DNA from: Marsupella aquatica
Taxonomy: Eukaryota; Plantae; Marchantiophyta
Direction of reading: 5' to 3'
DNA: 64,000 nt
Assembly: GCA_973895155.1 (NCBI GenBank)
Contig: OZ316899.1
Location: 5,273,241 to 5,337,240 of the forward strand
Positions within the stretch are counted from its first letter, which is position 1. Each line of letters starts with the position of its first letter. Shown piece by piece: positions 3,481-64,000 of the stretch. The notes under the pieces were generated by a model. It worked only from the letters and a program-made list of their open reading frames with translations. It had not been told where the DNA came from and ran no database searches. The position numbers and the translations under genes are program-made.

Positions 3481-4894
3481 ATGCAACATTTTTGCATGAT
3501 TATAACTCTATCATATAACTCTGGCTCGATTTAATGACTTTTGTTTCTCCTATCATGCAGGTCTGATCACAACCTTCAGGATTTCAGATGGAGTACTTCT
3601 ATGCAATTTGTTTGTAGCATAAGTCTCACAGTCTAGTTACAGAGGTGTATATGTTGTATAAAAAGAGACAAAAAAACTATGAGAGTTGATCAGTAATATA
3701 GTCATACAGGTAGTCATATAGTGCGCTTTAGACCATGGTGTCACCAGCATATATTCCACTAAGTGGCACCTTGTTCAGAATATAGCTACAGTGAGCTTTA
3801 AGAACCATGGTGTCACGAGCATTCCACTGAGTGGCAATTGTTCCAATGTAGCTCGAACCTTGAATTATTAAATGCAGTCCCTTTATTATCAAACAAAATG
3901 GATTGTGTACATAACTTGACTCTATGATGATCTTCAGAGCATGTACTTGGTTCACCTCACATGCATTGGTTCCTTTGTAAACAAGCAACTGGAATTTGAC
4001 AATTGTTAAGAACTCAAGGTATCCTACACGATCAAGTTCAATAGAATGTTGGCCTGCCAAATTAAAACTAAGGCCGAGTGTGAAATTTTCTTGCACTAAA
4101 TGATACGTATGTACAGTGCTTTTAGACCCAGAGATAGTGTGTGGTTGCAAGCCTGAACCTAATATGAAGCAGGCCTAAATTCCATATATTTATGTCCATC
4201 TCTTGATTCCCAAGGCTACTAAGCTTTCAGATTAAGAGTTCAAATTGTTCATTGAGATTGCTGAAGGGTCTATGAAGACAGGCAGTTTGCAAATATAATT
4301 TGTGCTTGGAGGCCTGAATGCCAGGTATATACTGAAAGGTCTGGGGAAAGATCAGGATACTACAAAGACAAGGCCGGAAGCTTAGTCCACGAGGCATTAA
4401 GTTTCAGATTCTGAACAAAGGAAGAAGTCAACATAAATTGTGGCAAAACACTCAGAAGTATGTCGCTCAAATTGCCGTGCTTTATATATACAAAATTTGT
4501 ACCATCATATGTACAGACATGTGCAGGTTACAAAATTGATGGATTCACATCTAATCCATCTAATCCATCTCACTGACCTATAAAGACAAATGGAGCGAGG
4601 CAAGTGAGGTAAGAACATCCTATTCCGTGTCCAAAAATTGCTCTGAAAATTGCCAAACAAGTATTGCAAGTCTACAACTCCCATTGCTACACTTCAAAGA
4701 TGCTGCAATCTATGCCTCGCCTAACTCTTGCCTACGTAACTCCAAAACAATGTCCTCCAGTTGCTTCAAAAGGGGAGATCCCTGTGGTACTGAACATTCT
4801 TGGCCCACAATCAACCGCGGAGGCGTCCCAGGATCCCCAGGTACTGGTCTCAATGAGAGGGGCAAGGGGAGGGGAGGATACGTCCCCAACACAT

Positions 4895-5350
4895 TCAAAA
4901 CCTCCACAGAGAGTTCCCCTTCTTTAACCCGCGAGCCACTTCACACCTACGACCCTGCAAGGCTATGGCCTGGACATAATCCCATTGCTCCTGCTCATTA
5001 CAACCTCTGAATTCTGAAGGTTCTAAGCCTAACCAAACTGAGGCACTATCCCATATGGTAGCCTTAAGCGGTTTTGCGTGCCTGTACACCGCATCAACAA
5101 TGACAACCTCAAAACGATACTTGTCAACACCCTTCAACCCATGCCCACACAAATCAGGGTGCAACTCCTTTGATAGCGAGCACAAACGGCCGTTTCCTTC
5201 TCGGTGTGGGCATGCCTTGTATGTAAATCTGCGAGGATAAGGGAATGTTGACGAGCAATTCACAATACTCATGATAGCATCAGAAAATGAACCAGTATCC
5301 CTGGTTCTCATGTAACGCTCCACCATTGTCATAGCCATAGCCATAGCCAT
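4895..5350 (-). CDS. RPA1 C-terminal-like OB-fold/zinc-ribbon protein (putative ssDNA-binding)
   Basis: YKACP..C..CGH..KYRFEVVIVD..LKATIWDSASVWLGLEPSEF resembles the RPA70 DBD-C pattern (YxACP..C..RYxLxvxixD..xtxF..a..llGxsaxel). The likely ATG at 5350 lies in a (GCCATA)n repeat encoding MAMAMAM. Confidence 0.6.
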   Translation of the reverse strand: MAMAMAMTMVERYMRTRDTGSFSDAIMSIVNCSSTFPYPRRFTYKACPHREGNGRLCSLSKELHPDLCGHGLKGVDKYRFEVVIVDAVYRHAKPLKATIWDSASVWLGLEPSEFRGCNEQEQWDYVQAIALQGRRCEVARGLKKGNSLWRF

Positions 5351-5574
5351 TGTCCCAAGCTCCTCTCGACTGCCGCAATCTGCAAGAGTCCTGCAGAAAT
5401 GAATCGAACTAACACTTGAATTAAGCAATTCACGCTAGAAGAAAGGATTGCAAATCATTTGTCGTTTCAAATACTGATTGTGAAGAAAGGATGGCAAGCA
5501 CTTCACTGTAAACTAGTAGCATGTGTAACCACTATAGACATCATACTTCCTGACCACGAAAAACTACAAGTAAC

Positions 5575-6124: not shown

Positions 6125-8627
6125 TTACAGTTTCTTAGCACCAGCACGACCTCTTCCTCGTCCTCTGGTTCCTGATACTGATTTAAGATTTGACTTTATA
6201 TTAACATCTACTCCCGATCCTTGACTGATGGTAGTTTCCCTCAATTTCTTCCTAACTGCAAAGGACTCTGTGCTCTTCTCTGTTCGCTGTCTCTTACTCC
6301 CCTTTGTAGGAGTCGTACTATCAGGATGAGAACCAGTTGACAAATTCTGCACAACTAAACCAAGTTCTGGGGTAGATTCAACATTGCCCTTCTCGACCTT
6401 CAGAATTGCCAGGTCCTCCTCACCCATCACCTTCCGGGCTGCATTGTGAAACTCATTGCCAGTCTTAGCGGTTACTTCAAGTGGGTTCTCTATGGCAACT
6501 CTAAGCAGACCATGATCTACATGCGCAGCTCTTCCAACAGTTTCATGGTACAGTGTTGATTTCTTCACACTTTCCTGCAACACAATACATGCCAGATTTA
6601 GTTTTGAGCAGCTATGAAGCCATCTACCCACTAATACTTACAAACTTCTTAGCCAAATCACAAACTCACAACAAAACAAACTGACCAGGTTTGGTGCTAT
6701 ACCTGTGAATAAAACTTTGTCACTTTCTTGTGCTTGGCTGCTTGATTCTTCCTCCTAGATTCAATATTGAAGCCATGGTTGCTATACAAATCAATTAGGT
6801 CCTTCTCGAAAGAGGTGGACTGTTCTTGCAAACCCCACTCATCCGCTAACTTCACTACCTCTGCATGGTCCATTTGAGGTGAACCCCAACACTCAAGCCA
6901 TCCTGGATGAAACACTTCAGAACAAGCTTCGCACTTAGGGGCTCTACTCTCATCCCTTTGGAGCAAGGGAAACAAACAACTTGGATGGTAACAATGGCCA
7001 CAAGGTGTTGGAACCCAATTATTACAAAAGAAGCCAAGAGAGCAAACTGGGCATTCTGTGATGAGGAAACAATTTTCTTCCGACTGTAGGGGACACAGAA
7101 CAGTAACAGGGCTTACATAAACTGCGCCTTTACTCATGTGATGTTTAAGTCTAGAGCACTCTGCATTTACCGCATCATACGATTTGGTAAGCTTGTCTGC
7201 AGTATCTGACAAGGTTTGCGCATTGCTAACTCCAAAGTACTCTTCATCATCCAACCTACTCAACTCCATCATCTTTGATTGGATCTGAGGGAGTAAAAGT
7301 TCATGCTACACCTCTTGCAACGATAAGGAATCTTGCAAATGATTTGTTTCATTGCAACACGCTAAAAATCTGGCTCGATAATCCTCATAGATTGCCTACA
7401 AAAGTCCCAACCCAACTGGTTCAGATGTTATGTACAATAATTACTTATGAAGAACACAGAATGAAACACGATACAAAAACAAGATTCAAGACATTGAAGC
7501 CAGTACTTCAAAACACATAAGGAATTTGATTGAAGTATAGTTACCTGATCAGAACCTCCTTCTGGGTCATCGTCATCAGGATCTTCCAGCTTAGCTTGGA
7601 GCAAGGCAATATCATCAGAAAGTTGGTTCTTCTCTGCCACCTTTGCCTCCATAGCACTATGTATCTTATCCATTTCCGCCAAGTACTTAGCCTTACGAGT
7701 TTGTAATTCACGCAACACCACTCCAAGATCTTTGAGCTCAAGGTAAACAGTATCCATCCGTGCTTTTCACGTGGCTGCAACATTTTGAGCCTTCTCTGCC
7801 TTTGGGCCAAGCTCTCAAAGACAGCGCTCCACAACCCCTAGCCGGGATTCCAAAACTACATGCTTTCCTAAAACAAGTGTGCCAGTAGTGACACCATGAC
7901 ATTGTACCTTTGGCAGCTCTTCAAACGTGACCTCTTGCGAGGTAGAATCTTTGCCTCCTGAAAAGTCCTGATCTGGTTGCTTGGATTGGGATGCACCGTG
8001 CTTGCTCAGTTGCTCAATATTTACTTGCACAGGATCCGATGCTAAGGCTGGAGGTGCCTGAATGCTTGATATCGCACCATGCAAATGTTTCACATCATTG
8101 TTACCTCCTACATCCGGGGGTACATCCGACTCCTTTGTTTCGCAGTCCTTCAATGGATTGTGAAGGACCCTAAGGCAATCTTCTTGAACTCCACTCCTTT
8201 TTGTTGACCCACACTTTGATAACTTGCTTACACCATTCAAACTTAAGCCTGGAGGCGGGGTATACATGTGCTCAATCCGCCTCCATGGTGGCGAATCAAG
8301 CTGCGGAGGAGTTTTGCGCACAAACCTCAGTCTTAGTTGCCCTCTATGCTTGTCCACACCACAAGCTGCCCAGTTCACTGCCTTCTTCAAGATGCGCTCA
8401 TAGTATAGTCCCCTGGCAACCTCCAAAGTGTACTGCTGGAATTTCTCGATCCCATCTAATGCACAAATCAGATTGTGGATGTCCTCTGCAGGAATCCCCA
8501 CAATCCCTTCCTTCTTATAACCATTCTTCTTGTCCTTCACTCCAAAATGCGCCTCCAACGCTGCAGCTGGCACATCTTTGGCAGTGAGGTCTTTTGGGAT
8601 CTTCCCCTCATTAGGCAAGCCAATCAC
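6125..8627 (-). pseudogene. Spliced accessory gene: transposon-associated helical (PMD/Transposase_32-like) N-terminus, coiled coil, RING finger, basic RGRGRGR tail
   Basis: Segments ~8627-7815, ~7800-7545, 7395-6703 and 6574-6125. GT-AG phase-0 introns at 7544-7396 and 6702-6575. RING: CPVC..PCGHCYHPSC..CEAC. One in-frame TAG near 7306, plus a frame break near 7815. Confidence 0.7.
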
Positions 8628-15522: not shown

Positions 15523-18460
15523 TGTCAGACCCTTGCTTATGAGCTAATAAGCTTTATTGTACTAAAAGCTTGCACTTGATAGCTCTTTATCACCAGGAAC
15601 TATGGGAAATCTAGGTCTCCCTTTCCCAAAGAGAAGACTTCTGGACTCACAACAATCATATGAGCAACATGCTAGACCACAAGGGCCTCAAGATTTCAGA
15701 TGAGTGCACATCAACAATTTCTTTCCCAGAAACGCGCTGAAATTTCATAAGAATTTCAAAGGAAGTACATGGGTAGGTTGTCACTACCTACTTGCTATAC
15801 TTTAGCTTCTTCAACTCCTACTACTTAACACTATGGTCCTTTCAAGCCTCAAGGCATACACTTGAGTTCTAGTACCCCTAGAACATCTACCTTAGTTCCC
15901 CTAAGGTCTCTTAGTGCTACTCCTTGATTCTCCATACTTGGACCCACACAAAGTAACTCACACCAACTTAAGTACTCCTTGCTTGGCTCCAACTCATCAC
16001 AAAGTCCAAAACCACCCCAAAGGCCAGCAAGTGACTCATCACTAAAAAAGACCAGCCCACCTTTCAAGGGGGTCAAAGATCCTTACTTATCCTCCTAACT
16101 ATCTCACTAACTCATTTGTTTGTCTTACCTAACTAATGAGCTAGTTGGTGGCCTTTTGAAAGCCTAAATCAACTCCTTGATTTTAGCCCTTCATTCAGGT
16201 CCACCTCACCTCCTGACTTGGCTGTCCTATCCCTCCAAATCAGGGACTAAGTCAGCCTCCAAAGTACAGTCATCCCTATCTACCAAATAGCTCTAAAAAT
16301 AGTAGAGGGATCAACTTCCAATGGCCCTCCAAGTTCCTCCAAGGTCTCCATGTAATTCAGGTCCTTAGGTACCGGCCCTCCATGTTGGCTTTAAGGACTC
16401 CACTCCTTACCCTCCTTATTCCTGGACTCCAGAACCAGCCTAGGTCCCCTTGACATGAAAGAGCCCTTCTCCAGGCCTCACCCATCCGATTAGGGCCTTG
16501 CGAATGACCCAAGCATGGTACCTCCTTACTGTACTGGTTAGTGGCTTGGTAATCTGGTTGTCCTCTCTGAAATGCTTGAGGTACACCTTGGTGAAAGCCC
16601 TCAGATTTGAACTTCTGCCCCTCTTGTCCACCTTTGAGCAAGCTAGGTATTGGAACCCCGTGAGACTACAAACGTAAAGGCCCAGTACTCCTGTGAAATA
16701 TAAGCCCTGGTCTTGACAGTAAGTGCATGGGTGAACGGAGAGAAAGAACTCATGGAAATAGGAGAATGAATGCTTCCCATCTATGGTAGAGTCAACTGCC
16801 TGATTCAGTTTGGAGCAAGGAGAGAACTAAGCTAGGACTTAGAGAACTGAACTTGTTTGAAGGGATCGTGGCTTATTTGAAGGAAGTCTGGCTGGTGCTT
16901 CTGTTCATACCAGCCCTCCATTCTCACAAAAATATCTCCCTTCCATGTGTTCTTCTCTCGATTGTCGGTTGACCTTGGTAGCATTCAATTTGTGAGTCCA
17001 AAGAGCAGCCATTCTAATTTCAGAAATATCTCTATGGACTTGATACTAATCCTGCATTCAATTCTTGAGTCCAAAGAGTAGCCATTCTAATTTCAGAAAT
17101 ATCTCTATGGACTTGATCCTGCATTCAATTCTTGAATCCAAAGAGCAACCATTCTAATTTCAGAAATATCTCTATGGACTTGATCCTGCATTCAATTCCT
17201 GAAGTTAAGGGCCACAGCTCAGATTTCTTGTCAATCACCCTAGCTGAGGAAATGGTCTTCTAGCTGTCCACTGTTGCCACCTCGAAGTTCCCCTATAGAA
17301 GGTGCAAGTTGATTTCGCCTGAAGAGCCCCCTTGTTAGCAGTCGATGACTTCTCCTTTCTGTAAAATATTCTCTCTGATTCAGAAATTTCAATCTTCTCT
17401 GTTAATTTCCCTTCCAGCCTTTGCTTTCCCTTCGATCTCCTCCTTTAATTCGTGCTCCAGAATTTCCTCTTCTAGTTCAGGTCTTCTGATTCTCCTTGAG
17501 CCCAACATTCCAGCCCAGTTCTTCTTACTTGATTTGGTGGAGTATTGGCTTTCCATTCAGCTGCAGCGTTGAGCTCCATTCTCCCTTCAATTTCACTTTG
17601 ATTTTTGCTCTATTGAATTCTGGGCTCGACACCTGGCCTTAGCTAGCTCTTTTACATTGTAACCCTGCCCTTTAGAGATGTAAATGAGTCCACCACGTTT
17701 CTCTACGCAGTTGAATTACCCCTTTGTATGCACAAAGAACATTCCTCCCTTTAAGTCTCCCTTGAAGTGCTACTTATGGCATTTAACATTAGCCATCTTC
17801 GCCTATAGCTCAAAACTCACTCATTTAAAAAACAATATTATGAACATACTCCTGGCTTTCCTAGCCCTAGGGCTAACTAAAACAATTCTTAGAATTGATA
17901 TATAACTAAAGTTGACTTTTCTATAATTGTTCAAAGTCTGCAATCCGTCATAATTCATAGCTACTTTTACAGAATTCGGACCAATCCCAAAAAGTATCTA
18001 TAAGTCCAAAACTAGGTTTAGTAATTCTAAGGGATAGTGTTAGGTATAGTAACACCATGGCTAGCCTTCAAAATACATTTTTTGCTCTATGGCTATTTTC
18101 CCTAGGTCCTGCAAGTTGGCTATTTTAAGTTTTGTTCCACTGTAAATAGCTTCTAATTGAACGGTCGAAATGACTTGCACTTTTACAAGGGTTCTCCAGG
18201 GCCTGCCTAGAACCTTCAGAAAAAATCCCAGCCTAAATTACAAACTCTAAGGATCTGATTACCTATCTAATCCACTAATCCACTGTTAAGTTAACCGTGG
18301 TTTAAACTAATTAAACTTTCTTACTCTGCTTTACTGAAGAGAGTTTACTTCAGTTTCACTTCTACTTCCCACTCATTTACAGGCATAATATGCTTACTTA
18401 GAACAAAAAAGAAAAAATCTAACCTAAAACTAATTTAACCCACTAATTGAGCGGCTCACA
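15523..18460. mobile_element. Solo LTR (2938 bp) inserted in gag
   Basis: TGTCAGAC...GGCTCACA ends, flanked by ATCTC / ATCGC (5-bp TSD with one mismatch). The gag frame is restored on removal. Confidence 0.85.
16981..17199. repeat. ~67-bp tandem repeat (3+ copies) inside the solo LTR
   Basis: GCATTCAATTCTTGAGTCCAAAGAG..CAGAAATATCTCTATGGACTTGAT units begin at 16981, 17054, 17121 and 17188. Confidence 0.9.
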
Positions 18461-18770
18461 ATCGCTGACTGAGCCATGGTGCTGCTCACCCACCAAATTG
18501 TGGATCCGGCTCACCCATCTCTTGCACTGGTGAACTGGGTTGGGTACTGGGCGCGTTACTACTCAACAGATCCCCTTCCTCGTTCTCCAGTTCCACTCCA
18601 AAAGCACTTCGTGACCCGCCGTTGCCGATTGCACTCTTCACCCTCTTGGTCTCCTTCCACCTCGCAATTTGCTGCAACCGCGCTTCTTCCCTCAGTGTTG
18701 CTCGCTCTTCCCATGGTGTGAATTCGTTCATCACCTAACACTGCGCAACAAACAATTCACAAGTAAGAAT

Positions 18771-18790
18771 GCCCCCTCCATCTAGCGCCA
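18771..18790 (-). promoter_or_regulatory. Primer-binding site of the gypsy element
   Basis: The minus strand reads ...GCCACA tttt TGGCGCTAGATGGAGGGGGC directly before gag, resembling Tat-type PBS sequences. Confidence 0.8.
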
Positions 18791-18794
18791 AAAA

Positions 18795-21700
18795 TGTGGC
18801 GCGTTTTCCAAGACCTCTAACCCCAAGAACTACCCTCAACTGATCATAAACCACTCGTTTATGTCCGTCCTCTTGCCGTATGGCAGCAATTTGGCTTGGA
18901 AACGCGATCCTCTCCTTCGATCCACACTTACCGGACCGGTTCTTTCATTGGGCTTGTGAATTGTGCACAACTGAGACACCTAATTCCTCTTTAACTTCTT
19001 CAGGTATATTTGTATTCCGCCCCCGGAATGTACCTCTACGGCTTAATTTCTTAAGCCGGCTGAAGGTCTTTTTCAGACGAACTCAACCCACACTTCACCG
19101 ACTAAACACTCTCAATCCTCACTTTTCTCTCAGAGTTTGATTGGGCAGTCTCCAATCAAGACAATGCAATTGTACTTTTCTCAACAGTTCACCCTATCTG
19201 ACTTAAATCGATCAAGCAACAGATATCACAACACTCAACTTCTTGGATGGCAAGAATCTGCAAACAGTGCAACGAGGCCAACTCAATTCAAACAGTTGCT
19301 CAGAAATCCAAGGGAACTGGTAGTTTACTGATATCCTGCGGTCTAGATTTAGCCGAGAGCTTCCTGTGCTCACAACAATACAGATTTTACACTAAAGCCT
19401 TGACTAAGAAAACAACCCCTCCCAACCACGCTGCCCGGGTTTTTATCCTTGCAGCGTGACTGAAAGAAGTGCGGAAAGCCTACCCCTACAATCCCGCCTT
19501 GCCACCGCGATAATCCTCTTTATTGAACAAAAAACAAAACTAATCTGCCTAAGCCGAAAACCCGATGGATCCGGACCTCTAACACAATCAAACTATTCAA
19601 GCCGATAGAGCGCTACTTGCCCTGTCCACATCCTACAACGGTCGCGCCCTCCTGGCCCAAGCCCTTCTCCTTCCGCCACGTCCTCCTTCCAACTGACGAC
19701 TGGCCCACCTTAATTGTTAGATGACCGATGGTAATCCTGAGCCGTCCGACTCTGCACCTTCCCCTGTACTCGGCTTTGGCTGACTACCCTCGACCACATT
19801 AACTACGGCTTTGGGTTCGGCCTTGGCTTCATTCTCCTTGGCAACGGTCTGGAGAGCTTTTGCCTTAACTTCCTCAATCCAAGCCTGCTCCCCGATGCGC
19901 TCCGTCTTGATAACCCACGGCTTCATGTTCTGGGCGTCCATAGAAGCAGTACCATCGTCTGAACCTGTCACTGCAACTCCAAGTTGATCCGCAGTACTTA
20001 CCTCTACCACAGCTGCCTTCAAGGCCACAGTACCGCAAATGTGAGCAACCATGCTCTCGACTTCCTCCGGAGTGGCTTTAAGGGGTTTAACTTTATTATC
20101 GCCCGGCCCCATGAACGTCTTTGCCAAATCTGCCACTAACTGCATGGCTTTGCCCCCAGTCAGGCTTGACAATAGTGAGCTCGGCTTTGGCATCACTGTA
20201 TTTCCGCCTACCATACTACTGACGGGCAGCCTTTCAGTTGGTGACCCATATCCCGCTTTGGCATACTTCTTCATTTTCTCCGTTTGATTGTCAGCACGTC
20301 TCTGCAACCCGATCATCTTATCCTTGGCCTCCTCCAACTCCTGAGATACGTCTTCAACTTCATTGTTAAGCTGTAATATCTCAGCCTTGGCCGCCTTCAG
20401 CTCCTCATTTAAGATCTGCACGATCTCCAACTCTTGCTTATTTGCGACTGCCTTCAAGGAGTTATTGATGGTTTCCAGCTTCATGACCTCTTCCTTCCAT
20501 GCCTTCTTTGTCTTCTCTATATCCCCCTGAAGCTCCTTGCGTATTTGCTGGGCTCGGCTTAGGTGATCATTGGCCATTGTACTCAGGGCATCCTCATGTT
20601 TCTCCTGCATGGCATCCAGCCGATCAAGTAGCTTTTCATGCTTCCCTTGGGTTGCGGCCAAGGCCTTCTCGCTCTAAGTGGTCTGGTCTTTAGCCGCCTT
20701 CCTAAGCCTATCGACTTGTTGATTAAGACCCTGTACCTTCTCCCTCACATCAGCTAACTCCAGCTGCACCTTTGTCAATTTCTCTTTAATCTGCTGGTTA
20801 TCCCATTGGTAGTTTTCCAATTGGTTGTTCGCCATCTCTAATTCCTGCTGCTTAGCCAAGAGATCCTGTTGTGCTTGTTGATTCACCCTTGATTTAGCCA
20901 CCTCTGTTTGCATGCCGCAAAGCCGAGCGATCACTTCCTCCTTCTTCAATCACTCTAATGTCATTGCCTCCTCCAGTCTCGTCTGATCAGCCACTTCTTT
21001 TCTAAGAAATGGCCCGGATTCCAAGTCGTTGCCGAAGATTTCTAAGGCTAAGAGTCCACACAAGTCTCCATACTCCTTAGCTAGATTTCTTGCGTAGTTT
21101 GACCTCCCAGGTGATACTGGCATCTGCCATCGGGGTTGTCTCTCCCAAGCCTCTTCCCTCAGCTGATCAAAGTCAGTGAGAGGTTTGGCCTGCTTCTCAC
21201 TAAGCCGTCTTATTTCTTCTGGCCACTCTCCTCCTGGTAGCTGGCATTCCTATTCTGCATTCCGAGCCCCCCACTCCTTAATCCTCTCTTGTAGCCCGAC
21301 TTCAGCTTCCTTCATCTTGTCAAATTCTAATGACGTCACATCTGGTGGAGGAGATTCTAGTGTTTTCTGGTCCTCCGGCTTGCCATAGAAGATTGCGGGA
21401 AATCTTCTACAAAACCTTCCCATCGTTCTAACTCCTGGCACCGGCCTCTCCCCGTGATTGACATAATCATCATCGTAGTCATCCACATTAACCTGACTAC
21501 CTAGCATGCCGGCCTCTTCTCCAAAGCCCCCGATCTCTTCCTCCGAATATTGTTGGGCTGCTACTGGTTGATTTTCCTCCACATGTCCCTCCACTTGGGC
21601 TCTGTTAGAAGCTCTTAATACCGCCCTCTCCTAGCTTTGGCTTACCTCCTCATCTGTCTTCGAATCCATTCGCTCGTCATATTTCTTTCTCTCTTCGGCA

Positions 21701-53070: not shown

Positions 53071-54989
53071 ATAGGCGTACGGACGTGGGTGTACGGCCTC
53101 CAGATTTCCAACATTTTAGTGGGGGGTCACTCATGGGCTTGTTGGGATGAGCTCGCGGAGCTGATTCCAACAAGAGGCGGCGCTCCTCAAACGGAGCCAG
53201 GATGAGCAAGTTATGGCCTGGAGAACTTATGTTTTTGCGGTACGGAAACGGCCATAACTCAGGCGTCTGAAGTCCGTTGAGGGAGCGACTTAGTGATTCG
53301 GAAGCAGGAAAAGAAGAGCTATCCAGGGGTGAGCTCAGGTGTGCACTTGGAAGGGCACCTAGTTTCGGCCATTTTGGGGTGCCTCTCACTTTCAGGGTTC
53401 ACGTGTACTGTTGGGGCGCCGTCGAAGGCACCGTCGGCCCCCTTGTTTTGGGTTTAGGGTTTTAGCAGCATGTGTGTGCCGCATGCTCCTCTTCAGTTTA
53501 AGGATTTCTCTTAGTGCAAGGTTTTAGCGGCGCCGCTAGGGTAGCCGCCACCGTTGTGACCCTGTGAGGGGTGCTTTGGTGTGATTTTTCAGTATTTAGG
53601 GGGATAGCCCCGAAGTAGTTAGGGGGACTCAGTGTGAAGTTAGCAAGGAGGGATAGAGTGGAGCCTGAGGAGTTTGAAAGCGTGTTCAGAGTAGTGAGGG
53701 GGAGCCATACTCATTGTCCGGAGAGGCAGGAGTTGAGTAGACGGCAGGAGGCCGGGTTACTCATGCAATGTGTATCGTTTTTCCCAAGAGATATGGATCT
53801 GTACATTTGACTTGATGGGCTTTTGTTGTGTGTTCCTTCTCCCTTTTTCGCTTTCCGAATTGTGTTCTCCCGTTCTATGATTTGAAGAAACTTGCTTGGT
53901 TTGAGTCGGCCTTGTGAGTAGGGGTGGTGACAGCACTCTTTGGGTGACTCCGAGTGAAGGTGTAGTGGGGTAGTCGGCAGGACTTGATCAAAAGCTGTGG
54001 GGTGAGGGTAGTCGGTAGACTTGATCAAAACCTACATTTCCGGGAGCGGAAACCAAAATACTCATCCTGGTGTGAAAAGAATCCAAATAGCGTCCCTCCA
54101 CGACCCCGTAATACGATACCAACGGTTTAAGCGAAGAAAAGTGCGGTTTGCACGTATTAACCGTTGGAGAGGCAAGTGACACTTGCTCTCTAACACGACC
54201 GCTACTCAACGGTCCTCCCTATTTGCACAAGCAACCAAACACCTCGGTAAGTAACCCTTCAGGATCTAGAACTCGCCAAGTCTAGCATCCTAACTCAAGC
54301 TCAACAGACGTTGGTAACACAACTACATTTTACGGCTGATTAACGGACTTTTAGAAGACGTTAATCATGATGTATATGGCCAGCGGAGGAAAGACCTCAT
54401 TCACAACGTTAATTACCACGTTTGGGGAGACGCTCTTTACCACGTCCAGAACATTAATCTTAACGTCGTACAATAGGAGGTATATGGTTTTACAACGTGT
54501 CAGACTACGTAAAATATACCCAGCGCTCGTGTTTAAGTTTACCCATAAACGTCGTGTCAGGCTACGTAATGAAACATTAACCACGTCTAGTACGTCGTAA
54601 TGTGCAATGCACTAAACGTCATTGTATTTTAGCGTCGTCCGTGGCCGGTAAATTACGACCTTTTTTGAGACGTATGGGTAAGTTGACATAGTAGGGGACG
54701 ATGTATCGTGCTCTTGTTGTGCGACGTACGTTGGCTTATGTAGGGCTCAACGATGTACTATGGTGGTTAAAGGTCTTATAAAGGAGAACGTATATAGGAG
54801 TACATACGTCCTATTACACATTGCACTGTCTGGGTGGGGTCCTTGTTAGGGTTCAGCTCACACACAATATAACCATGTGTTTTTACATATTGTAACTCGG
54901 AATGAGGTGCCACCACAAATGGGTGGCCTGAATCAAAATGGCAAAAAATATGTACATAATGCATGGAGGACCTCCAGCTACTGAAATAC

Positions 54990-57151
54990 CTACAACCTAA
55001 TGCCATTGAGAATGGGGCCTATCGCGTCCTGATCCTCCGCCTCGTCGCCAACGCAATTGATACTGCTGGGCATCCTGCTCTGAGGCACTGCTACTGCCTT
55101 CTGGTTCGGTGCAACCAAGGGTGGAGCCTTGCCTCTAGGTTTTGGCACTATCTGTCTGGTGCTACGTGTTACCCTAGTGGACCGCCTCTCACCACTCCTT
55201 CTCCTTCTCCTCTCTCTATCTCTATCTCTCCCTCTCTCTCTCTATCTCTATCTCCCTCCTCCCTCTGTCTCTCCCTTCCTTGCCCTCTGGCCCTATGAGT
55301 CTCCAGTGCAGGGAAAAGGTCACAAGAAGTGGAGCCCTGCTGGTACTGGGTCCTCCTCCTGGGTACCCTCCTCCAGGGCTACAGTGTTAGGCTCCTCATC
55401 CTCCTCAATGGGTCGTTCTACTAAACCCTCTGGTGCAGTCCAATCCACCTGTGCACAAGATACAATTTCAGTCTAGGTTTGCATAAGATACAGTTTCAGT
55501 CTAGGTCTATGGAATGGTACTGAACAAGCTAGCACACTTATCGGGTGGTCTTCCGGAATAGAGTCAAGCTTTGCCCATAGGGCTGCCGGGCCATATCGCT
55601 TAGAGTATAGCCGCTCTTGCTCACTCGGCTCGGCATCTCGACCATACTTCCGCTTTTGCAGCAAAGGGAAGTTACGTTGTTCAGGGCGATGTTATTTACC
55701 TATCATCATACAACGTTACTAATACATACGTCGTCCATTAAGACGTTCAGGGGGACCCCATAGTATTAACATCGACAGGACGACGTTAATACAGTGCTAA
55801 CGTAGTTCGAGGTACTACTAAGAAAATGTTGTAAGAGGGAAGGTAATGTGCGGCCGGACGACGTTAATACTAAAAAACGACATAAAGCACAGGATTACAT
55901 TGCAGCAGCACACGAACTGGCGAATGCAAACTTCAATGAGTATAGAGTGAGTCACTGCACTTACATAGGTTGCAAGAAATCCTCCCCATCCTCCCTGCCC
56001 CCAAAAATTAGTCACCTTCTTGCCACTCGCTTTTCGAACAGCAGTGGCCTTGTCTCCCATATGCACTCGCTTGCCAACTGGGGTGTCTGGGGCTGCTTCC
56101 AATTCGGAGACAATCAATTTGAAGTCCTCTTCACTCATCCCATTAGGTTTCTTGTAATCTCCTGTCCTCAAGCATCTCAGTTTTCGGACCTTGGCTCTCC
56201 ACCTGAAACGCTGATCAGCTAGGTGATTCACGATCTTCTTCCTAATGTGGCGGTAGTCAATCTCTTGCCCATTTTGAATCCAGTCTGCACGTCATTCAGG
56301 AGCAATTGGAACTTCTTCTGGTTATGCACAAGCTCCTTCCAAGTAGTCCAACCGGGACAGTGTTTAGCTATGCACGTCTGCACTTTGTTTGTGAGTGCTT
56401 TCTCATCCATGACATCCGGCCTAGCATCAAAAGCGGCAAGGGTGATGGTGGGAAGGTGCTCCCTATTGGCAGAAGCAGCTGCAGCTTGCTGAGAAGGACG
56501 TTGCCACTCTGGAGGAAACGATCGTGAGTGGTCTTCTCTCCTCTCTGCTCCTGTATGTCAATCTCCCCTATGTCTCTTGCTAGAAGTGCCTGCATTGTGG
56601 TCATTGGATCCTGTCCCCTTTTGCCTTCTCCTTTCAGTGCTGCTGTTTGACAAAGAACGAGATTGCCTCCTCCTCCTCCTATGTTGCCGATGGTCCCTCC
56701 TATCATCTTCTGGCCTGTATCTCTCATGTGGGATTGTCACTTGACTCTTGATAGGAGTTCGAGCTGCTGCTTGAGAATCTAGTTGAATCCCAGTGAAGGC
56801 AGGATCATCCCAACCATCGTCTGGTAGACTCGGGAACAAAGGCAGCATATCAATCAATGCCCCATCAAGCTCGGGCGCGGATTCAGGCACTTCAATCGCG
56901 GCCCCCTCCTCAATCTCGGCCCCCTCCTCGTCGGCAGGAGTGTTGGCCTCAATACTCTCCAGGTATTCTATAAACCTGGACTCCTTTGTTCCTTGTCCTC
57001 CCATGAATTGCCAGCTGTGGTTGAATGCTTGAACTAGTGAATGTGTCGAACATAGGGCTCGATGCACCTTCTCCAACTCCTCTGGATCCTCCAGACCCAC
57101 CTTCAGTGCATCAAAGTTCACACTACAGGGAAGATAGCCTGGATACGACAT
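54990..57151 (-). pseudogene. Spliced CACTA accessory gene (TnpA/Transposase_24-like), decayed
   Basis: RFRWRAKVRK..KKPNGMSEEDFKLIV..NFWGQGGWGGF resembles the Ptta/En/Spm family. Several exon-like pieces; 3' end approximate. Confidence 0.55.
55195..55285. repeat. (CT)n-rich microsatellite
   Basis: ctctctatctctatctctccctctctctc... Confidence 0.85.
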
Positions 57152-57554
57152 GGCAGACTATTCTGTGAGCAATTATGTGAGGTAGAGGAGGCAAGGAGAG
57201 GGAAGGACTAGAGGTGGGGAATGTTGAATGTGAGTCACATTCAAACACTCCCTCGATACTCCCCCGATGTTTCCCAAAGGAAATGACCGGGGATGCCTAA
57301 CCTTGCGGATCCACCATTTTCTTGATTGTACTTAACGACGTTAATCTAGATAAACGTCGTCCTTCGTGTTTTAAAGGTCATTGTTTGCGGGTCCATTGAC
57401 AACATTAAATGTTAGGGTTTCTTTGAAAAATGACGTTAAGGCCTTGTAACGTACTGTATGGCATTGTACTTTAGGGTTAGGGTTTGTGTGGTAGGTTTAG
57501 GGTTTGGATCCTTCGCTATGCATTAATCAAAGACGATTCAATTTGTTGCAAGGC

Positions 57555-58100
57555 ATGGTGATCTATGCATCGGACTCTCTGTCTGATGAGAGAGATGATG
57601 GGGATACGAGTCTTGGCTCCAGATACCGGCATCGTGATAGGGGTAGAGACTATTTGTCGGATAGGAGGAGGGATCATTCGCTGGTTAGGAGGAGGGACTA
57701 TATGCCGGATAGGTGGAGGGATGACTCACTGGATAGGAGGGATTATTTGCCGTAGAGGAGGGATTATTCACCAGAGAGCAGGGGTCGTGAGTCATTGCCC
57801 CGGAGGACGACTAGTGGATCTCGATGTCATCACCGTCCTAGTCATGAGGACGGAAGGAGAGAGAGGAGCCACCATCATCGGTCACACCGTCGCCGGCGAT
57901 CATGTGAGCCCCAGGCATACAGCTCACCTTCGCCAGTGGAGGAGGGGTTTGGAGCGGCCATGGCTGCTCTTCATGGTATTGGACCAGTCCGCAAGATGCC
58001 TTGCCCTTGTAGATGATGCAAGGGCGTTGTATCTCACGAGAGCACTACCATCGTTAGCCACTTAGGGATCCATGGTCATTATGTTCCACCGACACTAGAG
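57555..58100 (+). pseudogene. CACTA exon 1: RD/RS-rich region plus transposase-associated zinc ribbon
   Basis: One frame: MVIYASD..RRRD repeats..KMPCPCR*CKGVVSHESTTIVSHLGIHGHY..LE|gtaagt. Stops at 57753 (TAG) and 58014 (TGA). Confidence 0.7.
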
Positions 58101-58228
58101 GTAAGTTTTATCCTTTTGCACAACCATTTTGAGTAACTTTAACTTTTACTAGGTTGGGGTAGGTTGGCTTCTTGAGCAATGTTCATGTTTCTCGCTTTCT
58201 GAAATTTTGTTGCATACATGTGGAACAG

Positions 58229-59041
58229 ATTCTTATTGTACGGTCTCCCCCTAAGGACCACATGAGAGAGGTTGCAAGTCGAGCGCTCTCTGCACTGGTC
58301 CCCCCATCGGCACTAGATGCCACCTTACGGGCAATAGACCGTGTATTTGATAGGGTGAGGGTGGCACGGGTGCACCCTATTGAGAGGGGAGTAGTGGTCA
58401 GTACTAGACCACGGTCGTTGGAGTCTTGTCCACCTAGGATGAGGCCACCCCATTGCCCTTTTCTTGATGCATCTAGTGCCCGGGAACCGAGAGAGTTACG
58501 TGGGAGAGCCTTGGACATCATAAAGGACTCATTCCCTACCCAATTTGGGCTCCCATTGGACCTTCCAATCAGGGAACCTATCATAGTCTGGGGTCGCCCT
58601 TGGGTCCTCCTTCCCTCCACATTGGGCCCTAACGTAGGATTAGGATTATTTGCACTTATAGATATTGTGGTCCCTGATGGTTGTGAGCCCAAGGACTTGC
58701 CTCAGCTCTTTCCATTCTATGGGCCAAAGTATTCTGCACAGCGATGGCGCATCTTGTCTCGACAATGTCCAACCTTTGGTCGATATGGCATGTCTGTCAA
58801 GCTAGACCCTAGGTATGCACAGATGGATGGTTATCCACCCCACACTGGAAACTTGGCAGGTTACATCAATAGCACTGTGGGTTGTCGGCATTTAGGTTTT
58901 AGGCCAAACGCTGAGTGGCACGAGTACCATGACCAGACCCACCCTCGTTTGCCACAGGCTTGTACTCATTACATCTTGACCCATGCTAGCCGCACCATTC
59001 GAGCAGGGGAAGAGATTTTTGTAGATTATGATTGGCATTGA
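58229..59041 (+). CDS. SET-domain exon inside the CACTA element
   Basis: Acceptor CAG| at 58228, phase 0. PSTLGPNVGLGLFA..FYG..DG..GNLAGYINS..PNAEW..ASRTIRAGEEIFVDYDWH; open frame to the stop. Confidence 0.8.
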   Translation: MLIVRSPPKDHMREVASRALSALVPPSALDATLRAIDRVFDRVRVARVHPIERGVVVSTRPRSLESCPPRMRPPHCPFLDASSAREPRELRGRALDIIKDSFPTQFGLPLDLPIREPIIVWGRPWVLLPSTLGPNVGLGLFALIDIVVPDGCEPKDLPQLFPFYGPKYSAQRWRILSRQCPTFGRYGMSVKLDPRYAQMDGYPPHTGNLAGYINSTVGCRHLGFRPNAEWHEYHDQTHPRLPQACTHYILTHASRTIRAGEEIFVDYDWH

Positions 59042-59157
59042 GGATGGACATGATATATTCAGAATATATGGACCCATTGTTGCATATTGCATTAAATCAT
59101 ATTTTATTATTTGTTTGATTATAATGTTGTATTAAATAATGATTTTAACAATTGTAG

Positions 59158-59504
59158 GATGGTGCATACATTACCCCTACACCTCACCCATCCATGATGA
59201 CAATGTCAGCGCGTGACTTTCACCTACGGGCCACTCTGCACTTTTCTGATGAGGAAGATGTTGAGGGGGATAGTGACCATGAGGAGTACCATGATGCATA
59301 TGATGGAGACTTTGATGAGGACGATGGAGATGAGGGGGATGCACCCATTCTTGAAGAGGAAGCTTTTGCCCACCTTGTGGACGTTCACTTTGGACCACAT
59401 GCACCTCATGGCAAGAGGCCTACCATGGAAGTAGACCAGGAAGATTGGGACCAGTTGGAAATGGAAGCCAGAACTCCACTCTTCCTGGATTCTCCATCAT
59501 CACG
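59158..59504 (+). CDS. CACTA transposase (TnpD-like) exon: acidic tract plus EARTPLF motif
   Basis: TGTAG|GAT phase-0 acceptor and CG|gtaagt donor. The rest of the gene is displaced by the gypsy insertion in the next intron. Confidence 0.6.
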
Positions 59505-60450
59505 GTAAGTCTCATGATTGAATAGTATCATGTGTCGACCATTACTTACCACATGTCACGTCGTCGGCTGCGGCCTTAACTCAGACTTCAGCTTAGACGG
59601 GCACATCCCTCGTAAATCTGAGGGTTCGGGCAGGAAGGGAAGCACGTAATGCACCTTATTCTCGTAAACTAGCGCTAAGTACGCATACTGCTAAATACGG
59701 ACACCTCCTAGGTATGGTTTGTGTTCCGCCGCCGGAATGTACCTTAGTCGATAGCAGGATCGACCCTGGCTTAAGGGCTTCTAAGCCTTTGTGCTGTCCG
59801 CCTTCGATCCGGATTCGATGATACAGGTCCTCAACCCGTGCTTGCAACCACTTACCTGCAGGCTACACCCTGTGCACGTCTCGGGTAGTGCATTCGGCCT
59901 GGCGCTGCCACCCATATACGAGAAACCCACACACATACACGCGCACATGCATACAATCTCGATTTACACGAAGGAAAATGATGGGAAAGGATTTTACTAC
60001 AAAGGAAACATATGCGTACACTTAGTTGACCCGACAGCCCCGGAATGAACAGGTTCAAGGCCGAGGGTGCACACTACAACGGAGCCCGGCTCCGCACTCG
60101 CCCGGCGAGCTTAGTCCTACCCCCTCCCCTTGGTACTCTTTCATTCCCAGAGGTCGGGACTCCCCGCACATACCGCAGACGTCCAACTCTGCAACTAAAA
60201 ACCCCCTTTGCCTCTATCGAGGGGTGCACTAAATACTAAGGGACGAGCGACGGGGTGTCCTCTCGCCGAAGATTCGCCAACTAAGGTCCTAACTAAGCTG
60301 ACAGTCAGGCCGGAAAACGGCTGTGTCTTATTAGAAGATCCTAATCTACGCAGGCTGGACAGCATGGCAGCGCTGCTGTACCTGAGGCAGGTGCCTGTCC
60401 CAAGAGCCTGACTAAGCCAGTCCTAATCCTAATCTATTCCTACTCCGCTG

Positions 60451-62824
60451 CTAATGCCTGGCACGCTTGCCAGAGCCGCTCGAATGGGAGCGGCCATCCC
60501 GCTGCCTTCGAAGCCTGTCATTGTCCGCCTTGAGGAGCTGGACCTGGTCTAGCAGAGATTCGTTCTCTCGCCTTGTCGCGTCCGTCTCCTCTGCTGCCTC
60601 CTGACATGCCTCCTCTAGCTGCTGGGCGTCGCTCGTCAGTTTACCCGCCAGCTGGTCCTGCTTCTCGGCCTCGGTTTGGGGCCATGCCACCTCGGCCTGC
60701 AGCGTGGCTATCTCCGCCGTGTCCCGCTGGGCTCGTTCCTCGGCCTCCTCCAGGTCTTTCTGCCAGGTGACGGTTTGATTCTTCAAACTGTCAATCTGGT
60801 TCCGGAGTCGTGTAATCTCGGCCTCGTTCCCAGCTTTGGCCTGTTTGGCTAGGGCGGTAAGAGCGTGCGCCTTGCTAACAACTCATCGGCGGCTGCAACC
60901 TTGGGTCGTAGTTGCAGAAGCTCAGCCTCTTGAGCCGCAACTTCATTCTTTAGGTACACTGACTCCACCCGGTACCGCTCTATCCTCTGAAGGGCCTCTG
61001 ACTGGGCCCGACCTGCCTTTACTACGGCAACCAACTCCTGATTGAAGAAACAGGCTACCTTCCGGGCCATGAACTCCCTGGTATCCCGGGCAATTTGATG
61101 AGAGAAATCTCCCAGAAGCCCGTTCAGAAATGTACCCGGTACGAAGAGTTCCGGGTGGTCCAGGTTGTGCCTGTCCGGAGTTGGGCACGGGCAGACGTCA
61201 ACACGCGCGGGGGCCGGGGCAGTGACGTCCATCCCTGGGGACGTAACGTTGGAAGGGGCTGGAGTGTCCTCCTGCAGCAATGTCCGGTTCTCCGGAATAG
61301 CCACCGGTGGGTCTTTGGGAGACCCGGGCTCGGGTAAGACCTCCGTCGTACCGACTTCTGTACTTAGCCCGGCTTGTTGGGTCGCATCAACGGTTGCGAC
61401 AACCGACCCATCCGATACCTCCTCGGTTACGACTACAGCTACTTGTGGAGGTGGGGTGGGTGAAGCTGGCGTGTCCGCTGGACTTCGGGCCTCGGGTTGG
61501 GGCCGTCTCTCCAAGGCCGGGAAAACCCACCTAGCTGGGACCAGCTTTGTAACGTTGACACGGGGAAGGGGATGAGGCAGGTCTTCATCACGAACCCGTT
61601 GTCCACTGCTCCCTCTGAGGGAAAACTTGAAGATTGGTACTTGGCTCCCTTGCCCCCGGGAGCCCGTGATTCGACTCGATGGTCACCTTCGGGTAACCCG
61701 AAGATCATCTTGAGCCGAGTATGTTGACGCGCGTCGTCATAATTCCTGACGAACTCCGTCATGTCCTCCCCGTAGTACCTGCAAGTGTTCCAGGGGAGGG
61801 AGGCGAGGTGCTCGAATCCCTGAGTCTTCAGATACACCGCATGCTTGGGATGGAGGACGTTTTTGTGAACGTTTTCCCCCATGCGGTGCATCGTCACCTT
61901 GGCTACGGCTACCGTGGCCAACGGTAACCCGGATGCAGTGGTGGATTCCTTCCTCTTCTTCCCCCGTGACTGGCTCAGGGTAGGTGACACTTCCCCATCC
62001 TCCCGATCGGGCCTGGGTAGTGCCACTGCCGTTAGTAACGGGCCCGGGGTGGCCATGGTCACCATGTTGTCTGCCGGGGCCGCTCCTGGGGTCAGAGCAG
62101 GGGGTGGGGACGATATAGTGTCGGCCCCTTGAGCGCTTGTTCCTCTGGGCCGCCTGGTCAAGGGTGGGGTAGCCTCGTCGTCATCGCTAAGATCCACAAC
62201 GTTGATGACGGAGCGTACTTGTGCTGGCTGGGCGATCGGTGGTGGGGTTTGGCTAGGCTGCGGCTGAGGCTGAAGCTGAAGCTGAGCCTAAGGTTGAGCC
62301 TGAGGTTGAGCCTGAGGTTGCATGGGTACGGGTACGGGTTCGACTGAGTTGGTCATGTTGGTTGATGGCCGAGTTCCCATGAAGCTCTGTAGGTGCTGGT
62401 AGAAGTTCTCCGAAGCGAGTGCAGACGACCTTGTCGAACGGGTAGTGTTGGACTCGCTGTTGATGATAGCCCGAACCTGAGCAGGGATGTGGTCGAAGTG
62501 ATGTCGTTGCAAGTCGATCGTACCCGGGATATTGAAGACCTCGTCCGGAAGCCGAAGCAATGCTTCCCAGAAACCGATATATTTGTCTCCGTTGAAGAAG
62601 TACCCAGATACCTCTGCTGGTCGGTAAAGCTTGCTCTGAGACGGGTAGTCAAAGTTAAGGATGTAGTGGTGTCGTCTTGCTAGGCGGAGGGCTCGCTCGT
62701 ACTCGCGTTCGATTTCGTATCGGCACGGGTTGGCGTGTTTCAATGAGTCGGCCAAGTGCCTTCCGGTAGATAGGAACTGCATCCAGAATCGAATGGCCGA
62801 GCTGGAGAGGATCGTGTGCGACAT
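60451..62824 (-). pseudogene. LTR-embedded gene (~790 codons originally): N-terminal domain, QP repeat, PMD/Transposase_32-like domain, Pro-rich linker, coiled coil, basic end
   Basis: Pieces 62824-62288, 62197-61439 (YLKTQGFEHLASLPW..EFVRNY..MIFGLPEG..DNGF), 61514-60849 and 60786-60451 (..GKRARH). Confidence 0.75.
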
Positions 62825-63380: not shown

Positions 63381-64000
63381 TCACGTGGGGAGTAAATCAC
63401 CGACATACGTTGCAAGCTCCAAAGATCCGTTACGGTAGATCTGATTGACAAGGAAGGGCCCTAACCACCGGGTATGAAGCTTCCCTGGAAACTGCATGTA
63501 CCTACTATCGTACAGAAGGACTAGATCGCCTGCCACGACGTCGACCCTCCGTAGTCCTTTGTCGTGCTGCTTCTTCGAAGTTGCCTGTTTCTTCACGGCG
63601 TGTCGAGCTGCTAGTAGCCGTGCTTCTTCCAAGGCTTCAATCTGATAAGCTCGGTCTGATGAACTTTCAGATTCAGGTAAGCGATCCCGAATGCTGACCC
63701 GTGGAGTGTGTACTTCAAACTCGACGGGCACCAACAAATGTTGGCCAAACACAAGAAAGTACGGGCTATGACTCGTAGTAGTTTTGTAAGCTAGATTATA
63801 CGAGTACACCGCTGCGTACAACTTATCATCCCAATCCGTTTTGTGCGCAGCTACAATTTTGTTGAGGATCTTCCCAATGATACCATTTGCTCTCTCCACC
63901 ATCCCGTTGGCTTTAGGATGATACGGGGTAGTCTTGCGGTGCTTGACTAGGTAACGCTCCGTAAGCTGGGCTACGGTATCATTGAGGAAGTGGGTTCCAC
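63381..64000 (-). CDS. Gypsy integrase, C-terminal part (non-chromovirus type)
   Basis: GTHFLN..TTPYHPKANGMVERAN..W..YN..GDLVLLYDSR..PGKLHTRWLGPF. Runs off the window. Confidence 0.95.
   Translation of the reverse strand, partial: GTHFLNDTVAQLTERYLVKHRKTTPYHPKANGMVERANGIIGKILNKIVAAHKTDWDDKLYAAVYSYNLAYKTTTSHSPYFLVFGQHLLVPVEFEVHTPRVSIRDRLPESESSSDRAYQIEALEEARLLAARHAVKKQATSKKQHDKGLRRVDVVAGDLVLLYDSRYMQFPGKLHTRWLGPFLVNQIYRNGSLELATYVGDLLPT

Follow-up and report, generated by a model that had tools for sequence, protein, structure and literature searches.

Can a plant DNA transposon carry, inside the gene for its transposase, the coding sequence of a protein-modifying enzyme? The question is raised by a locus at positions 57555-59504 of the Marsupella aquatica DNA analysed here (contig OZ316899.1; the whole stretch of 64,000 nucleotides (nt) is called the window), where an intact SET-domain exon stands between two exons that read like the start of a CACTA transposase gene. 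We consider it likely, taking both statements together, that the locus represents a liverwort CACTA transposon (En/Spm, TNP2-type), of which a dead copy has left its 5' part here, and that a single transcription unit of its family encodes two proteins with a common first exon. Beside its transposase, the family would thereby encode an accessory protein composed of a zinc module and a SET domain, and it appears to make its own protein or chromatin modifier.

Anatomy of the locus

Exon 1 (57555-58100, + strand) runs from an ATG at 57555 through 182 codons to 58100. Its first 75 codons are rich in Arg and Asp, and this low-complexity part contains an in-frame 24/48-nt tandem array at 57636-57783. 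A zinc motif of the form CxCxxC-x13-H follows at 58002-58076, reading C-P-C-R-stop-C-K-G...S-H-L-G-I-H-G. Two in-frame stops interrupt the exon, a TAG at 57753-57755 and a TGA at 58014-58016, the second of which falls within the zinc motif. The exon is closed by a phase-0 donor, GAG/gtaagt, with gt beginning at 58101. The intron between exon 1 and the SET exon (58101-58228, + strand, phase 0) is 128 nt long, has GT...AG borders and has a G+C fraction of 0.37, versus 0.54 and 0.51 in the exons that flank it.

The SET exon (58229-59041, + strand) lies behind a phase-0 acceptor, aacag, and consists of 270 codons without a stop followed by a TGA at 59039-59041. It carries the motifs GLGLFA (58637-58654), GYINS (58859-58873) and GEEIFVDY (59006-59029), and its C-terminal end reads ...GEEIFVDYDWH; the SET fold spans approximately residues 98-270 (58520-59038). 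A spacer of 116 nt comes next (59042-59157, + strand), with a G+C fraction of 0.23, two ATTAAA motifs and no donor-like site. It leads to a second acceptor, ttgtag, which is in phase 0 like that of the SET exon and opens an acidic transposase exon (59158-59504, + strand). This exon has the conserved ...ARTPL(F/Y)...SR end, here ...EARTPLFLDSPSSR, followed after 59504 by a phase-2 donor, cg/gtaagt.

An earlier note, made from the letters alone, had described this arrangement: a first exon with an Arg/Asp-rich region, a zinc motif and two stops, ending in a phase-0 donor at 58100; a phase-0 acceptor at 58229 opening a terminal SET exon with the three motifs; and a second phase-0 acceptor at 59158 opening an acidic exon that ends in a TnpD-like motif. 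Direct reading of the locus agrees with the description throughout. Because of the two stops in exon 1 and a long terminal repeat (LTR) element inserted after exon 3, this copy is dead and can make neither product.

The SET exon encodes a SET fold

The 270-residue open reading frame (ORF) reaches 24.8 bits with the Pfam SET profile (PF00856; E = 3.1e-5), for which the gathering cut-off lies at 22.4, and the core alone scores 25.8 bits. An exhaustive search of a protein library returned 81 relatives at E <= 1e-3 and a word-index search 29, and 38 of 41 family members match the SET profile independently (E <= 0.01; best 6.5e-9). Given these relatives and the independent matches, the assignment goes beyond chance. 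Repeating the word-index search with a profile brought few additions, and a metagenome scan with a 13-sequence alignment found one locus only.

An AlphaFold2 (AF2) model built with a 34-sequence alignment has a predicted local distance difference test (pLDDT) score of 86 overall and above 90 for residues 90-270. The same model places two confident helices (residues 9-42, pLDDT >90) in a family-specific N-terminal extension of the SET exon. Foldseek gave 264 matches in the PDB at E <= 0.001, with the Legionella effector LegAS4 as the best (4.7e-7); those of the matches that were listed are without exception SET lysine methyltransferases. VIA-align Z scores ranged from 12.6 to 11.5, with root-mean-square deviations (rmsd) of 2.1-3.2 Å over 116-134 residues; the top match had Z 12.6 and rmsd 2.6 Å over 124 residues. 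We judged the fold by these structural matches. The earlier note had proposed a SET-profile search, and the outcome bears out its assignment both in Pfam and in the fold of the model.

The structural scores do not point to any one SET subfamily, since the classes tie at Z 11.5-12.6: Set1 scored 12.6, SETD8 12.5, EZH2 12.4, MLL1 and ASH1L 12.2, SET7/9 12.1 and LegAS4 11.7. Giant-virus SET proteins match the model at similar scores, and for this reason the scores do not separate a viral, bacterial or host origin. At the sequence level, when a profile of the 41 family members was compared with the PDB, only Legionella LegAS4 and 8sr6 matched across the whole core (E = 2.5e-5); EZH and MLL proteins matched in the last 30 residues only. 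The family and LegAS4 both have IN(S/F)S...NAE(W/F)VE where most SET enzymes carry NHSCxPN, and GEEIFVDY of the family aligns with the C-terminal QLLINY of LegAS4.

As a separate observation, a sequence-cluster atlas queried with the protein P0019 returned its own Streptophyta SET cluster and, in addition, a bacterial cluster labelled 'type III effector' SET; we treat these clusters as leads only.

Conserved gene structure and a probable shared N-terminus

Genomic context was fetched for twelve proteins. The loci compared were two of the leafy liverwort Calypogeia fissa (L001 and L015; two of the SET relatives are from this species), two of the complex thalloid liverwort Riccia sorocarpa (L004 and L005; assembly GCA_046195345.1, PMC11923412), the metagenome contigs L002, L016, L017 and L018, eight runs of one series (L007-L014), and two short contigs, L003 and L006. 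In all loci that have some kilobases of flanking sequence, the parts follow one order: a divergent gene on the minus strand, the zinc exon, the SET ORF with its stop, the acidic exon, Transposase_21 and DUF4218. This order recurs in about ten diverged elements, including those of Calypogeia fissa and Riccia sorocarpa. Transposase_21 (PF02992) lies downstream in every relative with flank (L001, L002, L004, L005, L007-L010 and L015-L018), and in L002 the two transposase domains match at E = 4.9e-31 (Transposase_21) and 3.1e-31 (DUF4218). L003 and L006 contain the zinc motif, SET and the acidic exon and end before the transposase. Two close pairs apart, SET identity among the elements is 31-63%. 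The proposal in the earlier note that other members of the family would carry the SET exon is thus supported in every relative with enough flank, and the exon always sits between the zinc exon and the acidic or Transposase_21 exons.

Not only the order but also the splice sites are conserved. Six lineages (the window, L002, L006, L007, L015 and L016) have the exon-1 donor exactly 33 codons past the zinc motif's first Cys, with the sequence GAG/gta or AAG/gtg. A phase-0 cag acceptor stands just upstream of the conserved start of the SET exon in the window, L001, L002, L004, L006, L007 and L016. At every locus examined a stop codon closes the SET exon, and a non-conserved, AT-rich spacer of 85-327 nt, mostly without a donor, separates it from the acceptor of the acidic exon. 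Homologous acidic exons occupy the same position in L001, L002, L006, L007, L015 and L016, and those that are fully covered (window, L001, L002, L007, L015 and L016) share the ...PL(Y/F)...SR end, with an Arg codon split at the donor. In L003 the SET stop is also followed by an acidic exon behind a cag acceptor, indicating that this is genomic or unspliced sequence and not cDNA. In Riccia L004 the ...PL(Y/F)...SR motif is contiguous with the Transposase_21 ORF, and the acidic exon is therefore the N-terminal region of the transposase itself.

The zinc motif and SET lie in one uninterrupted ORF in L003 (P0059, 423 amino acids (aa)) and in L005 (P0062), and likewise in the proteins P0080 and P0095. 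The annotation of Riccia sorocarpa joins the zinc region to SET in two predicted models, by a splice at the conserved donor in P0063 and in one exon in P0062. The idea of the earlier note that the SET protein shares its N-terminus with the transposase therefore has support from the conserved phase-0 donor and acceptor, from two single-ORF lineages and from two Riccia annotation models.

The stops of the window copy meant that its exon 1 was searched as three pieces around them, with natural zinc-SET proteins (P0059 and others) standing in for the joined model. Transpos_assoc (PF13963) was the top Pfam match of four intact exon-1 relatives, at sub-threshold scores of 21.2, 19.8, 16.3 and 14.4 bits versus a threshold of 27.7 (E = 3.4e-4 to 0.044) and covering profile positions 29-63 of 74; the window exon-1 pieces gave no match to this profile. 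In the structural model of P0059, the zinc module (residues 66-110) is a confident fold of its own (pLDDT 88-95) and is connected to the SET domain by a disordered linker of 100 residues.

Selection and co-divergence

We estimated dN/dS, the ratio of nonsynonymous to synonymous substitution rates, by NG86. The SET exon gave values of 0.25 for L001/L015 (dS 0.22) and 0.26 for L002/L006 (dS 0.21), each of these low-dS pairs including one decayed member; in the remaining pairs dS is saturated or nearly so (>=1.5), with dN of 0.3-0.8. The earlier note had raised the possibility of neutral evolution, and in the two unsaturated pairs the exon is not neutral. The identity matrices of SET and of the DUF4218-bearing transposase exon are correlated across nine loci (Mantel r 0.86, p 0.0004), a result that leans on one close pair. 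The tp2 part of this test was discarded, since its best L015 match belonged to another element next to the first.

A maximum-likelihood tree was built from 41 family members. Each of its major clades contains members linked to transposons, and the window copy belongs to a seven-row clade (support 100/99) that includes the Calypogeia protein P0009. Locus order, selection, matrices and tree agree that the SET coding sequence is carried inside the element and kept with it. As far as the sequences tell, selection has probably maintained the SET protein throughout the divergence of the elements, which argues that it serves the element.

In copies within the same genome, similarity to the window, as read from contig loose ends and joints, ends precisely with the SET stop (59041) and begins again at 59153-59155; these copies keep the zinc region but not the low-complexity part. 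Among the 12 differences from other copies that have the best support in the SET exon, six fall at third and one at second codon positions, too few to weigh.

These data bear on whether the SET ORF could instead be a host gene fragment captured passively (transduplication, as in Pack-type elements) and without a role for the element. DNA transposons of plants often pick up pieces of host genes, and one relative, P0081, is host-located in Calypogeia (L019). Passive capture is nevertheless close to refuted. The exon stays open and under purifying selection across elements whose SET identity is 31-60%, its position and splice phases are constant in two liverwort classes, and no close host donor was found by the exhaustive search, which returned this family only. 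The depth of the divergence also speaks against recent descent of most copies from a single captured piece.

P0081 (Calypogeia fissa L019, 10001-11512) is itself a single ORF of 503 aa with a Cys/His-rich N-terminus and the family SET domain. It has 30% identity, a Pfam SET score of 24.1 bits and a long branch in the tree, and it sits between host-type genes (mL59-like and FtsH) with no transposase within 10 kb, the only exception to the common context. It may be a domesticated copy or an ancestral host gene, and its presence hints at exchange between transposon and host gene sets.

The Calypogeia locus L015 showed two further features. A second CACTA transposase lies at 17384-20510, and 2.5 kb separate it from the first element upstream. 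One of its exons shares 88% identity with the L018 element, and directly upstream of it there is no SET match; it is either truncated, SET-less or a nested relative. A separate, distant SET copy occurs at 4546-5223.

Alternative gene models

Several observations weigh against two proteins with a common first exon and an active SET product, in addition to the dependence of the Mantel result on one close pair. For the window copy itself, Transposase_21, terminal inverted repeats and a 3-bp target-site duplication are unseen. The His of the NHS motif is replaced by Ser across the family, and the protein ends at Tyr+3 without a post-SET segment. Neither the 58100>58229 nor the 58100>59158 joint was found in four DNA-like contig runs, which show deletion variants and variable spacers only. 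Since these runs contain no splice-type joints, the splicing claim draws on comparative anatomy. Finally, members of the clade of the window share a Met 12 codons from the start of the SET exon, and separate translation of SET alone is conceivable there.

The last two points are also those that would favour a SET gene nested independently in intron 1, with its own promoter and start codon and no exon in common with the transposase. The conserved Met begins MREVA, MRALA or MRAKA, gene callers give stand-alone proteins of 260 aa from it, and the zinc-SET junction is read from comparative anatomy. Yet the Met is not conserved beyond the clade of the window, a phase-0 cag acceptor precedes the conserved N-terminus in seven loci while the donor position is fixed, and the zinc motif and SET share one ORF in two lineages. 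Taking both sides together, we regard a nested gene as improbable.

Joining everything into one fusion polypeptide of SET and transposase is far less probable still. Some annotation models do join SET pieces to the transposase (P0098 and P0112), and in P0057 (304 aa) no stop separates SET from an acidic tail. Against this, each locus examined has the stop of the SET exon and, behind it, an AT-rich spacer that lacks a donor. The joined models, moreover, excise half the SET domain, a common tendency of ab initio prediction. P0057 deserves mention in its own right: past GEEIF it has neither the Tyr motif nor a stop, and its acidic tail resembles the acidic exon of the transposase. It is possibly a read-through or fusion variant.

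Catalytic potential

Several key residues of SET enzymes are kept. The GxG motif that binds S-adenosylmethionine (AdoMet) is present as G137-L-G139, with G139 invariant and G137 at least 90% conserved; E262 is invariant; and the catalytic Tyr, Y267 of GEEIFVDY (the ELxF/YDY motif of SET enzymes), is at least 90% conserved. The Asn-His pair of the NHS(C) motif is kept by half: Asn214 is present at about 90% or more, whereas His has become Ser215 in nearly the whole family. The ORF ends three residues past Y267, and there is no post-SET or C-flanking segment and no Cys there. Such a segment, which closes the lysine channel, is not universal among SET enzymes. Conserved positions of the family make up GxG, LFP(F/Y)xGxxY, IDGxPxRxxNxAGYINS, PNAEW and GxE(I/L)xxxY. 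The residue remarks of the earlier note were right: the catalytic Tyr is kept, NH has become NS (N214-S215), and post-SET cysteines are absent since the ORF ends at Tyr+3.

LegAS4/RomA (PDB 5czy, 8sr6 and 8swi), provides the closest solved sequence relatives of the family profile. It too is a compact SET domain used by a genetic parasite. It is an active H3K14 methyltransferase whose conserved C-terminal Tyr is the catalytic base (PMC10653858), and in the alignment with the family profile its motif reads INFS, likewise without the His and with Phe there. The resemblance has limits, however: identity is only about 20%, and LegAS4 needs its post-SET segment and ankyrin repeats for activity, whereas the transposon protein has neither. 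The short post-SET segment of LegAS4 contacts the H3 peptide. Both H3 binding and good AdoMet binding depend on the ankyrin domain, without which the SET domain binds AdoMet poorly (PMC10653858). By analogy, and given the His-to-Ser change and the missing post-SET segment, activity of the transposon SET may require a partner or be lost.

A pseudo-enzyme, kept for binding or scaffolding, for example as a reader of lysines or histone tails or as a decoy for host SET complexes, would be in keeping with the NHS motif, where Ser stands for His in at least about 90% of members and both N214 and S215 are nearly invariant, with the end of the protein at Y267+3 without a post-SET or C-flanking segment, and with the poor cofactor binding of the isolated LegAS4 SET domain. 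We consider this somewhat unlikely. GxG, Asn214, Glu262 and Tyr267 are the most conserved residues of the family, LegAS4/RomA is active with INFS at the same place, and the N-terminal extension (residues 9-42) could replace a flanking domain. With Asn214, Glu262 and Tyr267 kept, His replaced by Ser, counterparts of the LegAS4 post-SET and ankyrin parts absent and an N-terminal extension present, the sequences make catalysis by the transposon SET plausible, not assured.

A model for the element

We propose that exon 1 would supply, to both products, its low-complexity region and a small CxCxxC...H zinc module that is probably a divergent relative of the 'Transposase-associated' domain. Joined to the distal acceptor at 59158, it would continue into the acidic exon and then the TNP2 transposase (Transposase_21 and DUF4218). 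Joined to the proximal acceptor at 58229, or read straight through in the two lineages where the intron is absent, it would be translated into the SET exon up to its own stop. The predicted SET product has about 450 aa and consists of the zinc module, a flexible linker and the SET domain. Since the SET exon has no donor of its own, we infer two possible uses at the RNA level: its acceptor would act as an alternative 3' splice site, which leaves a long 3' untranslated region (UTR), or the exon would be an alternative terminal one, polyadenylated in the AT-rich spacer.

Most likely the SET protein would methylate lysines with AdoMet as cofactor, the zinc module that it shares with the transposase guiding it to the substrate. 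Candidate substrates are the chromatin of the element and a partner protein. In a more specific version, the zinc module would recognise the DNA of the element (arrays of CpG-containing motifs or the termini) and deliver the lysine methyltransferase to the element's own copies, where a histone mark would shape silencing. The protein would then be a chromatin writer that is encoded by a transposon and targeted by sequence, and liverwort CACTA elements would have kept it since before the split of Marchantiopsida and Jungermanniopsida; telobox-like motifs upstream of exon 1, described below, could tie the element to TRB proteins and Polycomb of the host. We offer this version tentatively and regard it as unlikely.

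Transposons with their own epigenetic enzymes are rare and informative, in that they reveal which steps of silencing matter and can seed host regulators. Here the SET domain is built into the transposase gene, with a zinc module common to both products, and the arrangement is kept across deeply diverged liverworts. Transposons in early-diverging land plants carry unusual marks. If active, the protein would offer a simple system in which to study how a DNA transposon manipulates histone or protein methylation in these plants, and its SET domain would be a compact one whose cofactor motif is a variant (INS versus NHS).

Relation to known systems

En/Spm makes TnpA and TnpD by alternative splicing. 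The liverwort family resembles it in producing, from one transposon unit, two proteins through what we infer to be a choice of splice site, and in its TNP2-type transposase (Transposase_21 and DUF4218), N-terminal CxCxxC zinc motif and arrays of short motifs. It differs in that the second product is a SET protein and not a DNA-binding protein of the TnpA type, and in an extra divergent gene of no matched family. VANC is an accessory protein of VANDAL (MuDR) transposons that is thought to act on the epigenetic state of the element. The liverwort SET would likewise be a transposon-encoded accessory protein, for which an anti-silencing role is only a hypothesis; VANC, moreover, is no SET-type enzyme and comes from a different superfamily. 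SET genes have been reported in Helitrons.

Also close is the accessory gene PAG2 of Plavaka (EnSpm/CACTA superfamily) in the red alga Bostrychia moritziana, which encodes SET together with a DNA methylase domain, PF01555 (bioRxiv 10.1101/2025.02.11.637652). Both are CACTA-superfamily elements with an accessory SET (PF00856) coding sequence. PAG2 is a separate gene, whereas the liverwort SET is an exon inside the transposase gene, joined to a zinc module, in a land-plant host; in Pfam searches PF01555 was absent from the window ORF and from full-length P0059, P0062 and P0063. HarbingerS and Phytophthora MuDR families are also DNA transposons with a gene for a SET histone-lysine methyltransferase (Kojima & Jurka 2014, cited in PMC12730594). 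They belong to other superfamilies and other hosts (oomycetes and others), and the text available to us does not describe an exon in common with their transposase. In the full-text literature searched, whose scope does not extend to Repbase reports, no CACTA element of a land plant is described that has a SET exon in the transposase gene.

Other features of the window copy

Forty-nine nucleotides after the acidic exon, the intron is interrupted by a high-copy repeat, an LTR-retrotransposon insertion that extends from 59553 to the window end at 64000 (strand unassigned). Summed contig depth in four public runs rises about 10- to 50-fold at 59553, and in two of them loose ends pile up there. Long minus-strand ORFs in the repeat occupy 60451-60786, 60849-61514, 61439-62197 and 62288-62824. 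The ORF at 63381-63902 resembles the end of a retrotransposon integrase; Pfam gave no rve match for it. From the acidic exon to the window end no CACTA transposase exon was found, the unit being cut by the LTR element at about 59553. The 5' end of the element is not fixed within the window, and the 3' end lies outside it. No pair of CACTA/G terminal inverted repeats was detected in seven fetched contigs, which probably lack one or both ends.

Upstream of exon 1 lies a decayed divergent gene (55818-57151, minus strand) in three pieces, 57151-56558, 56410-56228 and 56231-55818. Its L002 counterpart encodes 387 aa (756-1916 of L002, minus strand), and a tblastn search with that protein matched the window at 56291-56046 with 37% identity over 82 aa. 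The divergent gene is also found upstream in L005, L015 and L016. The encoded protein is acidic at its N-terminus, rich in Lys and Ser in the middle and conserved towards its C-terminus, with no significant match in Pfam. A reading as Transposase_24 was rejected by the Pfam search. The gene may play the role of TnpA.

Between the divergent gene and exon 1, a region at 57330-57510 (+ strand) contains short CpG-containing motifs of the ACGTCGT/GACGTTA type and four telobox-like TTAGGGTT motifs. The latter start at 57412, 57471, 57477 and 57497, all on the + strand and 50-140 nt upstream of the exon-1 ATG. The window contains 11 copies of TTAGGGTT versus 2.5 expected, a count reached in 0 of 100 shuffles, and four of the 11 fall within 57330-57510. 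Pairs of the motif also stand just upstream of exon 1 in L002 (2278-2307) and L007 (905-919), both of them diverged, and the motifs may belong to a promoter or 5'-UTR that has been conserved. TRB proteins, which are linked to Polycomb, bind teloboxes in flowering plants. Clusters of the ACGTCGT/GACGTTA type occur at 54300-54700, 55680-55870 and 57330-57450 and nowhere else in the window, in keeping with the arrays of short subterminal motifs of CACTA elements; analogous arrays are present in L002, L017 and L018. Finally, the introns of the L002 transposase gene contain palindromic TTACCACCTTCNGAAGGTGGTAA-type repeats (4309-4401, 5248-5409 and 6569-6724) that are related to the subterminal TTACGACC motif.

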